64,000 nucleotides of DNA from Tetramitus jugosus (lineage: Eukaryota > Protista > Heterolobosea): positions 1 to 64,000 of the forward strand of contig OW569369.1 of NCBI GenBank assembly GCA_937625935.1. Direction: 5' to 3'. Numbering within the stretch: the stretch's first letter is position 1; every line of letters begins with the position of its first letter. A model generated the notes under the pieces. It had not been told where the DNA came from and searched no databases. It saw only the letters and a program-made list of their open reading frames with translations. Shown one piece after another: positions 15,900-59,807 of the stretch. A program made the translations under genes and the position numbers.

Positions 15900-16205
15900 T
15901 CATCGTAACGTCTCGTAGTGCTTGATAGAATGGAGTACCTTTCGATGGGAGTCATCAACTCGTTTCTTCAATTCTTTAGCCAGCTTAGTTCCTCTTTTCA
16001 TCTCCAAGTGGAGCAAGGAAAGAATATTCTTGGAGGCATTGATGTCTCTATTGCGAGTTAAACACTTAGTGGTTGCACACTGTTTAACACCTCTAACAAC
16101 AGACTCTTTCATCAATCCTTCTTTGTCTTTTCTTTGATGCTTGACTGAAGTCAGATGACTATGACACCCACAACAAACTTGGCTCGTCAGAAATTCATCG
16201 ACCCT
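15900..16205 (-). pseudogene. C-terminal Fanzor fragment (RuvC-II, Zn finger, RuvC-III), same family as the 55659-57587 gene
   Basis: VDEFLTSQVCCGCHSHL..VKH.R...SVVRGVKQCATTKCL..NRDINASKNIL..L..EM aligns closely with the intact copy; no Fanzor similarity upstream of ~16205. Confidence 0.85.
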
Positions 16206-16908
16206 TTCGGTGCAGGATCGTTTTCTTGGTAACAACTCCAAAATCTTCCATTATATTTAAAAGGTCATTCATCACATCAGAACTTGCCGTCTCTTTGAAG
16301 GAAGAGGCCCTCAAATCCGGACTGCAACAAGCAAACAAAACCCAACCATAAACAACGTCAGGCATGTTTATTTTGCTGGCAAGAATCACTTCGGTCTCAA
16401 ACCAATAATATGACTATTCCTCTCCACTATGACATTGACTCAGTGACTCGCAACCCTCGAAGAATGCCAGTGTATTAGATCAATATAGAGAGAATCGCTT
16501 GTACATGCTATTTGTTTGATCCTGGTATCATGAGTGATGATAATTCTTCAGCGTTCGTTGTTGCTGTTGAGAATTGGTCAATGGTATGGTACTCCTCAAA
16601 CTCATTCTTTGGAACGGAAGATGTATGTGTCTATGCTAGTGGATACAACGCGGATCACTACGCGGTACTCCGTGACGGTTCCCCAAAGCTTGATTTTCTA
16701 ACTAGACAAGTGAAACACTTGTTTGGTTATGTGAGCGCGATGATGACATCTATAAAACAATGAAAGGTACAGTGGGCACAGCACGTCTGAACCTATCTAT
16801 ACAACTTCATTATTAAGACAACTTGAGATATGGTCCACCAAATTGCGGGAGCTGATTTTATCATTTTTCGAGTAGGGAAGTGAGAGTATAGTATCAGTGT
16901 TCAACTAT

Positions 16909-55112: not shown

Positions 55113-55573
55113 TTAGGTAATAATTACTATCTCTCCAGATGAGTCTTCATCCACTTGTGTGCAAAAGTATATTCTAGCTTCTGGGTTTGCAAAAATACCT
55201 GTGTGGGATCGTAGGACACTTTCAACACCATTGAGCAAGCAAGTAAAACGGCCATAAGGTGTTGTCCAATTGGACTTCTTTGCCTCTTCGTACCCGTATT
55301 CCCCATCCACAATTAACGATACCACATCACCAGAGTAGAACTTGTCAGTCCATTTGGTGATGCTTTTCCTCGTAAAGGATCCATTGTTGGAACAACCAAT
55401 ATTTTCACCCTCAAGGAATGCTCCCAAGAAAACAGATCCTTGATCTTTTGTATACACATCCTGAAGAATGTTCTCTTCAATGATACCCAGCAACACCCAA
55501 AAAGAGGCATACAAGAAAGTGGATCTACATACTTCCACCTTGAGGTCAATTTTGGTCGTTCCTCTTGTGTTAA
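55113..55573 (-). pseudogene. 3' half of an F-box gene split by the Fanzor transposon
   Basis: In frame with 59377-59807 once the element and one TTAA are removed (...SRPI-NTRGTTKIDLKVE...). Confidence 0.85.
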
Positions 55574-55658
55574 GGATGTAGTTCGGTGAAATAAAATCCA
55601 TAATAAAAAAATTATGATTTCCCGAGAAGACACCTTAACGCTCCTACATAATCGGGAC
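55550..55658 (-). ncRNA. Predicted Fanzor omega-RNA (scaffold ~55658-55570, guide ~55569-55550)
   Basis: Lies between the Fanzor stop and the element end; stem tcccga/tcggga, hairpin aaatcataat-tttttt-attatggattt, and atgtag/ctacat pseudoknot with the TIR. Confidence 0.72.
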
Positions 55659-57587
55659 TTACATAGCAGCTTGATGGAGTGAGCCTTGGAGGTGTTCCAC
55701 CATTTTGATTAATTCTTTTGCGACCTTTTTCTTCCTCTTGAAGGCATCGGGACGTGACTGTCCATCCATTTCTGTTCTCAGTAGATGGAGCATGTTCTTG
55801 GCCGCATTGATGTCTCTGTTGTGAGTCACTAAACATTTAGTGGTTGCACACTGTTTAACTCCTCGGACGACAGAGACATTCAACGTTCCATTCTTGTCTA
55901 TTCTCTTATGCTTGACTGGCTTCATGTGAGAATGGCAATGATGACATTTCTGACTTGTCATGAACTCGTCGATCATTTTCACTTTGAAGTGCTCATTCAA
56001 CTTTTTCAATAGCTTTCCTTTTGGTGTTGGAGCATGTCCTTTGTAACAATGACCAAAACCAGCATTGCCCATCCCAATTAACATGCTTCTTCCATTTGCT
56101 CTCTTTCGAAAGTCATTCATAACATTGGCAATCGTCTTATCTCTCATTATATAGCTATCCCAATTCAGTCTCTTCACCTTTGGGGTGCAATAAAAATTCA
56201 ACAAATCGTCCTCGACTTTCAATACAGAATTGATGTGTTCAAGGAACAGACCACTTGTAGGTACACCGGCCTGTTTGATTGAGTTTTGGAGTTCATCCAA
56301 GTTCTTCTCATTCATTTCGTTCCATTCTGCTTTGTATTTCAACAATCGCTTGGAGTTTTTTGAATGATGGGATAGATGTCTATATGTTTTGTTCGACAAC
56401 TCCCACTTCTTGCCGTCTGAATCAACACAACTCACCAAAGTAACAATACCCGGGTCAATCCCAACCAAATATTCAGCACCTTCGTTCATACTTGTTTCTT
56501 TCTTTCTCTTCTTTGCTTCTTTCTGGCCCTTGGATTCCTTTGCCTTATTGTTCTTGTGATTGCCAACGAGTTGATGTCTGAGAACAACAGAGGCCTGAAT
56601 ACCGTCAGTTCTGATAGAGTCGATTTGAATCTTCTTTATGCCAACATTCAAACACTTGAGATTGTATTTCAATTCAATGGGTTCAATTACTTGTTCATTT
56701 CCCTTCTTTTGTCCTCCTGGTTTCTTCTTCTGTTGGAGCATGTCTATCAGGTCCGTTGTACCTATCTCCATGCATCTACATTTAAAGTGGGACAAGGGCA
56801 ACAATGCAAATGATTTTGTTCCATTGCCAATCAGAAACTGTTGAACATGCCAGTAAAACTTCAGCATGTTGTTGGTGTTGTTGTTCACAAAAGATTCATC
56901 AATAATCTCGTCGGTTTCAGCACCAACAAGTGTTCGAATCTCTTGGATCAACACAGGAATAGTCTCTATCAACTCTTTTGGAGGCAGTTTGACAAAATCA
57001 TAAACTGGAGTGACGAATGTCAACCGTCTGATAATATATTCTACGACTCTTCTGTATTCAGACCATGGGATTGATTGACCATTGTGCAATTGAGCCATCC
57101 TCACTCTCAAGTACTTTCTCAGTCTTTGTTCCAATGTGAACTTGAGCATGTTAGAAATATTGACATTGAGAGACTTGGCAACGTAATTGATGGATTTGGA
57201 TAACTTCTCACAAATCTTCCTTTGCTTGATTATTACGTCATCCATGTTGACTGACCCGTTGATGAGGTTGACATTATCGTCTCTTGTCTTCGACTTGCGT
57301 CCAAACAACACTGAACCGATTCGTTGAATAAATCCTTGATTCAAGAGAGGGATATCACAATTGTTCTCCAAGTGCCTCAAAACAAATATGTTTATAAATC
57401 TTGTGAGTCGAAGAGCAATCCTTGTAATCTCCAGAGCTTGAGTTTGTATGATTGGTAACAGAGTTGGATGATGCAACAACAGAGACTTCAGACCGACCTT
57501 GACCACGTAATGTGATGAGTATTCATTCTTTTTGACAGTCTCTCTTTTTCTCTTTCTCTTACCGTCCTTAGGCACGCCTCGTGGCAT
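55659..57587 (-). CDS. Fanzor (Fanzor1-like) RNA-guided RuvC endonuclease, 642 aa, intact
   Basis: RuvC-I LVGIDPG, GHAPTPKG, RuvC-II IDEFMTSQ, Zn finger CHHC...CATTKC, RuvC-III NRDINAAKNM; N-terminal NLS KRKRKR and VVKVGLKSLL; start MPRGVP at 57587. Confidence 0.93.
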   Translation of the reverse strand: MPRGVPKDGKRKRKRETVKKNEYSSHYVVKVGLKSLLLHHPTLLPIIQTQALEITRIALRLTRFINIFVLRHLENNCDIPLLNQGFIQRIGSVLFGRKSKTRDDNVNLINGSVNMDDVIIKQRKICEKLSKSINYVAKSLNVNISNMLKFTLEQRLRKYLRVRMAQLHNGQSIPWSEYRRVVEYIIRRLTFVTPVYDFVKLPPKELIETIPVLIQEIRTLVGAETDEIIDESFVNNNTNNMLKFYWHVQQFLIGNGTKSFALLPLSHFKCRCMEIGTTDLIDMLQQKKKPGGQKKGNEQVIEPIELKYNLKCLNVGIKKIQIDSIRTDGIQASVVLRHQLVGNHKNNKAKESKGQKEAKKRKKETSMNEGAEYLVGIDPGIVTLVSCVDSDGKKWELSNKTYRHLSHHSKNSKRLLKYKAEWNEMNEKNLDELQNSIKQAGVPTSGLFLEHINSVLKVEDDLLNFYCTPKVKRLNWDSYIMRDKTIANVMNDFRKRANGRSMLIGMGNAGFGHCYKGHAPTPKGKLLKKLNEHFKVKMIDEFMTSQKCHHCHSHMKPVKHKRIDKNGTLNVSVVRGVKQCATTKCLVTHNRDINAAKNMLHLLRTEMDGQSRPDAFKRKKKVAKELIKMVEHLQGSLHQAAM

Positions 57588-57899
57588 AATGTTATTGTAT
57601 TTGTTGTGTTGTATTTGTTGTGTGAGATGAATCAAACAGCGAAAAAGACAGCGCTTTTTAAACCGAGGTAGATGGCCGTTGCCGTTGTAAAGACAGTCTC
57701 AACGGAAATTTTTACAACTGCACCAATTCCGCAGCTTAGAGGAAACTGATACAACATTTATTGTATTTTTTTATAATATATCCACCTATCTATCCAATCT
57801 TGAACGCGACAACAACAACGAAAAACACAAGTCGCACAACGAACATCAACAACAACAATCAAATCAATCAAAAAGATGGAGAGTCGACAAGAGGTGTCT

Positions 57900-58547
57900 A
57901 TTTGCAGTGTGCATTGTAGATTCTCTGAGCAAGTTTCAAGTACTTGAGGAGAATACAAGCGGTACCAATGTGTATTGAATTCTCTTGACACCACCCTGAC
58001 CAAAGTGCTTTCTGGCTGCGGCCAAAACTTTAAACAATTGATCAGAATCGCTATTATCAAACAAATGAACCAATCTGGCAATCAAGTTCTGTTCTTCTTC
58101 GAAATCTTCGAGCAATGTTGCAGCTATTGGTGAGTCGTCAGAAGGTGAGAATGTTGTCTGGTCTTCCTCATCCTTCAACAGTGGACGAATCAAATCAAAC
58201 AGTTTGTTCACTTGTTCAAATGTTGAAATCTTGTGTCCATTGTCAAGTGCGCATCTCACAATGCTCAGTGCAATAAACTTTCTCTGTTCATATCCAAGAG
58301 AATGAATAATATCACCATACTTCTCCAACTTCAAAACTGTTAGCACATTGTTGTATGACTCGAGTGGCACCAACAACAATCGCTTCAACATGTCTACAAT
58401 TTCATCTGAAGCAAGTGCAGTGCTATTCAATTGACTAGCAATGTTATTAATAATCTTGTTGACATAGTCAGTGTTATCAGGATATGTTTGAAGAGCAAGT
58501 GTCATCAATGAGATCTGAATACTCAAGTTATCGGACAATTCAACACC
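57900..58547 (-). pseudogene. VPS35: Captured internal fragment of retromer subunit VPS35
   Basis: QISLMTLALQTYPD..DYVN, LLLVPLESY, EDFEEEQNLIARLVH, ARKHFGQGGVKRIQYTLVPLVF; no start or end of VPS35; frameshift near 57945. Confidence 0.88.
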
Positions 58548-58820
58548 TCTCTAATGGTATCAATAGTAGGACAGAATTTGACAAACGTCAGAAAACTCAC
58601 ACTCATCATCAGGTCACTCGCTCTCACGATGTCCTTCAGAGTGTTTGTTTTCTGTGCTTTTGCAAGTTTTTTTTGATGAAAAAATCTCTAATGGTATCAA
58701 TAGGACAGAATTTGACAAACGTCAGAAAACTCACACTCATCATCAGGTCACTCGCATTCACGATGTCCTTCAGAGTGTTTGTTTTCTGTTTTTTGCAAGT
58801 TTTTTTTGATGAAAAAAATC
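58548..58820. repeat. Tandem duplication, two ~137-bp units inside the transposon
   Basis: tctctaatggtatcaata...tttttgatgaaaaaa at 58548-58684 and 58685-58820, few differences. Confidence 0.93.
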
Positions 58821-58829
58821 AATGAACAA

Positions 58830-59150
58830 ATGGGAAAACAAGGAAAAGGCGCCAAAAGAAGACATAACCAACACCAACAATTGGTAAAGTTTGGAGTCAA
58901 AAGAAAAGTAAGAATAACCGATATACATATTGATTTATTTGTGTATCTAGTTGGTTCGTTCCTTGGTGTAGAAGATGTGTTGAATTTGGTATTGACGTGT
59001 CGGGATTTTCGATCTTCGATAGTCAATAATCTATCAACAATAAGGTCTTATATGGACAATTTGTACTCACACTGTTTGGCCGTTTGCAAGTCAGGCTTAC
59101 CGTGCAAATTGCAAAGGAAATTTTTTGTGCCTGTTTTGATTGCTTGTTGA
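58830..59150 (+). CDS. Short F-box-motif ORF (cargo, probably truncated)
   Basis: ITDIHIDLFVYLVGSFLGVEDVLNLVLTCRDFR resembles the F-box consensus. Confidence 0.55.
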   Translation: MGKQGKGAKRRHNQHQQLVKFGVKRKVRITDIHIDLFVYLVGSFLGVEDVLNLVLTCRDFRSSIVNNLSTIRSYMDNLYSHCLAVCKSGLPCKLQRKFFVPVLIAC

Positions 59151-59376
59151 ATCAACCAGTACTTGACCGCATCCTGGGCAGAACCATGAGGCAGTATTCA
59201 TTATAATACTCTTGGCTGAGACGGAACCACAGCCGGAACAGAACCATTGATGAGATGTGGCAACCATGATCGTAAGCTTGTGTTTGTGATTGGGTGTCGT
59301 GCACCTGTTTTTTTGGGCAGTCTGGAAAATTTATAGGTAGAGTTCTATTTACGTTGAGGTCCAACGAACTACATCC

Positions 59377-59807
59377 TTAATGGGTCTCGAAGCGTTGGTG
59401 ATTCTGTAAATTTGTCGGACGTCATTTGCCGTGAATCGAAACACCTTTCCACGCTCGTCGATGATCGGACCTTGAGGGTTCATGGTTATATTGCCCTTGG
59501 AATCCATAAGGTGGGGGCTCCATCTGTGCTGTCTTGTCATCAGCACATTGTACTTCCATGTCTTACATGGAAACATTTTGTCTGTCCTTGGTCGTTGCCG
59601 CTGTTGTGCTTTCTTTTCCGATTGCACGACCGGTGGAAGGGTATCAGGTGCGGCCAGGTAGAAGAGGCGCCACTGTGTTTCAGAGTCAGCAATCTGGTTC
59701 AGACGACGATTGGCAAGGAGGATACCGAAGAGGTCTTCAACAGGCAGGAAGAGAATAAGTTCTCTTAACACATCGTCTGATAAAATAAGGAGTTTCATCT
59801 TGTTCAT
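59377..59807 (-). pseudogene. 5' half of an F-box gene split by the Fanzor transposon
   Basis: LLILSDDVLRELILFLPVEDLFGILLANRRLNQIADSETQW F-box; the frame runs into the TIR after SRPI. Confidence 0.88.

Follow-up and report, generated by a model that had tools for sequence, protein, structure and literature searches.

At the right end of a minus-strand transposon in Tetramitus jugosus, the question arises whether the terminal-repeat bases that bound the element in DNA also fold, as RNA, into the scaffold of a Fanzor guide RNA, and through which pairings they do so. The window analysed here is the whole stretch of 64,000 nucleotides at positions 1–64,000 of contig OW569369.1; it represents a chromosome end, where a C-rich, telomere-like repeat with a period of 12 nt occupies positions 1–950. 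The region after the Fanzor stop codon is very likely a Fanzor1 guide-RNA region in which the transposon end helps to fold the RNA. Specifically, we assign nucleotides 55671–55555 of the minus strand, at a probability of about 75%, to the omega-RNA of this Fanzor1, consisting of stem-loop 1 (SL1), a linker, a long stem 2 and the guide, as in SpuFz1 from Spizellomyces punctatus. The coordinates of all features are collected in Table 1.

Table 1 Features of the element, its insertion site and the predicted omega-RNA (positions in the window)
Feature	Position	Strand	Remarks
Interrupted host F-box gene, 5' part	59381..59807	-	
Left target-site duplication, TTAA	59377..59380	-	predicted TAM core at the empty site; empty allele with a single TTAA
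Left TIR, class A, GG start	59365..59376	-	12 bp perfect; 15/17 with the right end
Cargo: two 120-nt direct repeats	58567..58820		spacing 134 nt
Cargo: captured Vps35 gene fragment	57936..58538	-	Pfam positions 330-515 of 726, E 1.7e-41
Intact Fanzor1 gene, 642 aa	55659..57587	-	RuvC D378, E541, D592; zinc finger C548, C551, C580, C585
Stem-loop 1 (SL1), 8 bp, 7-nt loop	55644..55666	-	55666-55659 with 55651-55644; overlaps last codons and stop
SL1 loop UCCCGA, 5' strand of candidate helix K	55652..55657	-	
G-UUAAGG, 5' strand of the stem 2 basal helix	55633..55639	-	invariant in 11/11 aligned ends, five lineages
UCGGGA, 3' strand of candidate helix K	55620..55625	-	here can instead pair with CCGA at the TIR inner edge
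Apical AU-rich hairpin of stem 2	55599..55616	-	
Right TIR, class A, CC end	55574..55585	-	terminal CC within the basal helix; other bases able to pair farther up stem 2
Right target-site duplication, TTAA	55570..55573	-	last four bases of the RNA scaffold
Predicted guide, ~15 nt of flank	55555..55569	-	length from SpuFz1 and SfAV data (PMC10432273, PMC10711439)
Interrupted host gene, 3' part	55113..55569	-	

The element is a young, non-autonomous, TTAA-duplicating transposon of Tetramitus jugosus with terminal inverted repeats (TIRs) and an intact Fanzor1. It occupies 59376–55574 on the minus strand (3,803 bp), with TTAA on both sides and perfect 12-bp TIRs that start with GG and end with CC. 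When the two halves of the host F-box gene are joined with one TTAA, an open frame of 295 codons results, and the empty allele with its single TTAA was found in assemblies of two soil RNA libraries (joint 55569–59377). The left TIR, more than 30 sister copies that diverge at this position and the empty allele all agree on an element boundary after TTAA. The Vps35 fragment of the cargo is common to the sister copies. Many contigs cover the cargo region (57800–59200) in all four RNA libraries, part of which may be explained by the host's own Vps35 gene.

The 642-aa protein falls within the size range of Fanzor1 proteins (600–700 aa, with an enlarged REC fold). Its RuvC residues follow a D-E-D order in which C548 lies six residues after E541, i.e. 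the glutamate is placed just upstream of the zinc finger, and all three catalytic residues and the four zinc cysteines are conserved among 106 relatives. SpuFz1 is the sole sequence match in the PDB (E 1e-13). The predicted model (pLDDT 90.6) matches the folds of SpuFz1 (TM 0.71, 19% identity, shared catalytic layout), PpFz1 (TM 0.65) and, at a lower level, GtFz1 from Guillardia theta (TM 0.60), whereas the match to Fanzor2 and TnpB is weak (TM 0.23–0.24). The top seven Foldseek matches are likewise SpuFz1, PpFz1 and GtFz1 (E 1e-24 to 9e-17), with Fanzor2 at 9e-5. Judged from this model, the protein is a Fanzor1, and any claim of a pseudoknot in its RNA therefore matters: the preliminary description of this DNA had invoked a pseudoknot as the known Fanzor architecture, which is wrong for Fanzor1, whose RNAs are reported without the TnpB pseudoknot (PMC10432273, PMC10711439, PMC13565253). 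One CASP16 paper mentions a pseudoknot in Fanzor1, contrary to the primary structure paper; we adopted the latter.

We compared copies throughout the T. jugosus genome (26,350,207 bases; ~30 long copies, 34 distinct right ends) and four divergent lineages (L030, L031, L051, L054) from this genome and from metagenomes. Profile searches returned few close relatives: one hit (L058) was the L031 locus again and four (L059–L062) had no usable or comparable end. A metagenome search yielded only near-identical fragments without RNA ends, and viral contigs contained no relative. A remnant of a second Fanzor subfamily lies in the window at 15957–16211 on the minus strand (C-terminal 90 aa 60% identical, 3' end different); related remnants are present on C48 and C7 (L041, L042). 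Two metagenomic loci with 61–63% identity (L052 4505–4556, L053 3846–3897) have non-TTAA ends and no clear TIR; in both, a hairpin is followed by CGUUA and by a short stem that the element end closes, which is the same plan with a third kind of end.

SL1 appears once 13 more upstream bases are included than in the preliminary description, which had started the RNA at 55658. The 5' arm of this hairpin is formed by the last two codons and the stop codon, its 3' arm contains ATGTAG, and its pairs have probabilities of 0.95–1.0. Divergent copies show one- and two-sided changes in SL1, with G-U replaced by A-U or G-C and one A-U replaced by G-C, and L054 forms the hairpin from different letters; by prediction and covariation, SL1 comprises 7–8 bp in four lineages and 5 bp in L031. 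A 5' boundary at 55658 would cut this best-supported hairpin, which starts at 55666, so that the scaffold measures ~97–102 nt rather than the 85–90 nt first proposed.

In the basal helix of stem 2, UUAAGG pairs with the last CC of the TIR and the TTAA duplication. This helix is 100% paired in 11 of 11 sequences, with pair probabilities of 0.95–0.99 except for the last pair, and does not vary at all among the five TTAA-ended lineages. Because its 3' strand is fixed by transposition, support comes only from the internal UUAAGG, which is conserved although the bases around it diverge. UUAAGG/CCUUAA is present in 29 of the 34 genomic ends, the exceptions being three internal deletions, one lost target-site duplication (TSD) and one end without a scaffold. 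Small deletions within the RNA occur in L007, L010, L015, L023 and L026, three of which lose UUAAGG; L007, L010 and L015 have full ORFs despite these deletions. Two junctions lack a full TTAA, the right one of L018 (CCTT then GG) and the left one of L051 (ATC then AAGG).

The minimum free energy (MFE) of the 102-nt scaffold is −28.4 kcal/mol (z −3.5). The same two-stem layout is the MFE structure in B1, B2, L030, L031 (z −4.0) and L054 (z −5.8), and L051 adopts nearly the same layout with its 3' end in a neighbouring register, a comparison that comprises five independent lineages only and in which the L030 fold is no better than shuffles (z −0.3). Rfam contains no relevant family for the scaffold. 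The scaffold end is common to 35 ends, which diverge directly after TTAA, where the guide had been proposed to start; this guide start and the earlier identification of a Fanzor omega-RNA region are both supported. The proposed AU-rich hairpin (55620–55594) is also present, although as drawn it shares base 55620 with the proposed stem 1. The idea that TIR bases act in both DNA and RNA is supported through the basal helix and not through CTACAT, and TIR and TSD as part of a scaffold have already been described (PMC10711439).

The RNA 5' parts of the copies are nearly identical, yet their right ends fall into two classes: class A ends read CTACATCC-TTAA (11 of 34) and class B ends read CCGCCACC-TTAA (23 of 34), with GG..CC termini in both; the TIR of most intact copies is not that of the present copy. 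In the present copy, the 70 nt upstream of the 3' arm of the apical hairpin show no difference from a class B copy (70/70). The last 35 nt, by contrast, match L031 at 30/35, a class A end beside a non-Fanzor ORF at 34/35 and class B at 20–21/35. Class B-type sequence gives way to class A-type sequence at the 3' foot of the apical hairpin. In terms of sequence, the present copy is thus a hybrid of a class B-type 5' part and a class A end, and we infer that recombination at the hairpin placed a class B-type Fanzor and its RNA 5' part on class A ends, a direction judged by which lineages have well-paired stems and not by a rooted tree. The basal helix of stem 2 survives this exchange, as CC-TTAA is the end of both TIR classes. 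In L017 and L022, the proteins are 80% and 66% identical overall, yet their last 75 aa are identical and their RNAs nearly so, a pattern that points to homogenisation of the 3' end by recombination.

A candidate addition to the SL1, stem 2 and guide fold, which it would supplement and not replace, is a true pseudoknot in which the SL1 loop UCCCGA pairs with UCGGGA (helix K); we consider it less likely than not. The preliminary description had drawn this pairing as a nested stem 1, a form that is not retained, but the complementarity itself is not accidental and could form as a helix between a hairpin loop and an internal loop. Helix K would cross SL1 as well as the UUAAGG/CCUUAA helix, so that TIR end and TSD would constitute one strand of a pseudoknotted helix pair beside the guide, a TnpB-like topology. 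RNAalifold selects the helix unprompted, and five of its pairs are kept at 100% in the main family, L030 and L051, with G-C changed to A-U on both sides (UCCCAA/UUGGGA in L030, CCCAA/UUGGG in L051) while the other four pairs are fixed. This is, however, a single clean compensatory event. L054 (CUAAA/UUUAG) would add two further two-sided changes, but its match is one register off and the A-rich loop has a different partner; in L031 the loop is a GCGA tetraloop, with 3 bp at most. Per lineage, a match of this length would arise by chance within the 12 nt preceding the hairpin with a probability of 0.0003–0.01, the lineages being kin. Freeing the strands costs 3–6 kcal/mol in class B lineages compared with roughly 9–13 kcal/mol of stacking, whereas in the present class A copy it costs 9 kcal/mol and disturbs stem 2. 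In addition, three Fanzor1 structures contain no such pseudoknot (PMC10432273, PMC11423790), that of SpuFz1 among them. We regard the combined reading, namely a pseudoknotted omega-RNA in this Fanzor1 lineage on a Kolobok-ended element whose RNA 3' strand was exchanged between families with the basal helix kept, as a possibility that currently falls short of even odds.

Less probable is that the RNA of the class A hybrid is impaired, the copy spreading passively with a fold inherited from class B ancestors. Consistent with impairment, pairing in the central part of stem 2 is poorer than in L031 or L054, and the first guide base, C, can pair with a linker G and lengthen stem 2. This base is C in only 2 of 36 right ends, of which the present copy is one; G is just as rare ahead of the left TTAA, so that a symmetric transposase preference suffices to explain the rarity. 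Against impairment, SL1, the basal helix and the hairpin are all still present, the distal part of stem 2 is dispensable in SpuFz1 (PMC10432273), and five class A copies have kept a full ORF together with a full scaffold.

More doubtful still is a switch in which SL1 and helix K alternate, such that a ribosome at the stop codon opens SL1, helix K forms in the mRNA, and SL1 forms after excision of the RNA. In favour of such a switch, both helices covary and the stop codon lies within SL1 or the UUAAGG strand in every lineage. TnpB and GtFz1, however, share this overlap of the RNA with the ORF end and are not known to use a switch, and K and SL1 share no bases, so the choice between them is not forced.

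The motifs on which the preliminary description built its fold are all present at the positions given (TCCCGA 55657–55652, TCGGGA 55625–55620, ATGTAG 55649–55644, CTACAT 55581–55576, TTAA 55573–55570). It had proposed that the nested stem UCCCGA/UCGGGA encloses a loop whose ATGTAG pairs with CTACAT of the TIR, and six perfect pairs can indeed form in the present copy and in 7 near-identical class A ends, i.e. in 8 of the 34 right ends, but in none of the 23 class B ends. Class B keeps ATGTAG without CTACAT, whereas L031, a divergent lineage (~40% protein identity) with native class A ends, has CTACAT without ATGTAG, and the pairing thereby fails the conservation test that the preliminary description itself had set. 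Neither the match nor a compensated version is found in L030, L051 or L054. Covariation across copies had been suggested as a check; the alignments are paired in 50% of cells, no better than shuffles and without consistent compensatory change, the two double-change cells falling in a column where most rows are unpaired. The fold would require SL1 to unfold and reaches at best about −18.5 kcal/mol without a pseudoknot penalty, compared with −28.4 kcal/mol on 102 nt for the assigned fold. By itself, the 6-bp match does not exceed chance expectation: among shuffled 26-nt loops, 13.5% find a perfect 6-mer complement within the final 20 nt, and the actual loop contains two, AUGUAG and UUAAGG (with CCUUAA). 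Nor do we find the TnpB/Fanzor2-type pairing with guide-flanking bases; CTACAT ends 6 nt before the guide. The ATGTAG/CTACAT fold is accordingly very improbable, and its match is probably explained by the end exchange, which joined the two motifs by accident.

The assigned fold of SL1, linker, stem 2 and guide most closely resembles that of SpuFz1, which, like PpFz1, has an SL1 of 7 bp, a linker, one SL2 and the guide (PMC11423790). Further likenesses to SpuFz1 are the TSD within the scaffold, the non-autonomous TIR element and deletion copies that retain the RNA end. The SpuFz1 scaffold is shorter (75 nt versus ~100 nt) and lacks a pseudoknot where we find candidate helix K, and the TTAA duplication, GG..CC ends, Vps35 fragment and two exchangeable end classes set the present element apart. 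GtFz1 is similar in that a TTAA-containing TAM is expected, the RNA overlaps the ORF end and tertiary contacts link stem-loops (SL2 with SL4, PMC11423790); its RNA differs in length (150 nt) and in having four stem-loops. The transposon right end is also within the scaffold in TnpB (ISDra2, IS607 ISXfa1) and Fanzor2, and, if helix K forms, the guide-adjacent helix would belong to a pseudoknot here as well. In the TnpB and Fanzor2 RNAs, an apical loop pairs with about five guide-flanking bases; in the present RNA, such bases serve to close stem 2, and the helix that crosses would be internal.

By its sequence features, namely TTAA duplication, GG..CC termini and short TIRs, the carrier has what we term Kolobok-type ends. 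piggyBac termini read YY..RR. A piggyBac carrier was rejected on the GG..CC termini. Kolobok elements, set against piggyBac, combine TTAA duplication with 5'-RR and YY-3' termini (PMC9587614); the present element differs from them in having no transposase. A 2026 review (PMC13565253) does not name Kolobok among the carriers of Fanzor, and in the literature searched the sole paper that mentions Fanzor together with Kolobok does not count the latter as a carrier; no paper paired Fanzor with Tetramitus. The non-Fanzor ORF beside the class A right end at C47 (L032 648–1136, minus strand) resembles a transposase C-terminus by eye, and an open frame of 308 aa is present in a second copy at C1:696987–697358. 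Searches with the C47 ORF against Pfam, PF20700 and Atlas gave no support for a transposase.

By analogy with TnpB and Fanzor1, the RNA would be cut from the 3' end of the transcript and loaded into Fanzor1, which would be guided to the site left by excision, where the TAM is followed by a guide match; repair of the cut from the filled allele would then restore the element. Such restorative homing is listed as shown for bacterial systems only (PMC13565253). Contigs on the element 3' end, class B ends included, were scored for presence only and occur in four soil RNA libraries. Two soil RNA libraries contain a deletion form that joins the left part (58798) to 55693 and keeps the RNA end, likely a 'ghost' element. 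The filled right junction also presents TTAA followed by a guide match and reads C-TTAA. Of 18 insertions, 17 have A or T immediately 5' of the left TTAA (p 0.002 relative to background); C stands there in 1/18, compared with 15/36 at the mirrored base of the right flank (Fisher p 0.01), a bias seen after the fact in a sample that excludes most class B2 left ends. These flanks indicate that the TAM is probably A/T-TTAA, in which case empty sites would be cut and the element's own right junction, C-TTAA, would be spared. An oriented transposase preference alone could also produce the flank bias.

What is new here is modest and consists of the Kolobok-type GG..CC ends, an RNA 3' strand swapped between two TIR classes, and candidate helix K. 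An RNA started at 55658 would lose SL1, the part bound most closely in the solved Fanzor1 structures, and the corrected boundaries therefore matter for building a nuclease. Helix K, if real, would be an exception to the rule of pseudoknot-free Fanzor1 RNAs. The family represents a natural experiment in which a Fanzor guide RNA moves between transposons: across five lineages and two TIR classes, one internal UUAAGG pairs with any CC-TTAA end. With a cultured amoeba, a natural empty allele, a predicted guide and a predicted A/T-TTAA TAM, this system offers testable predictions on the role of Fanzor in its hosts.
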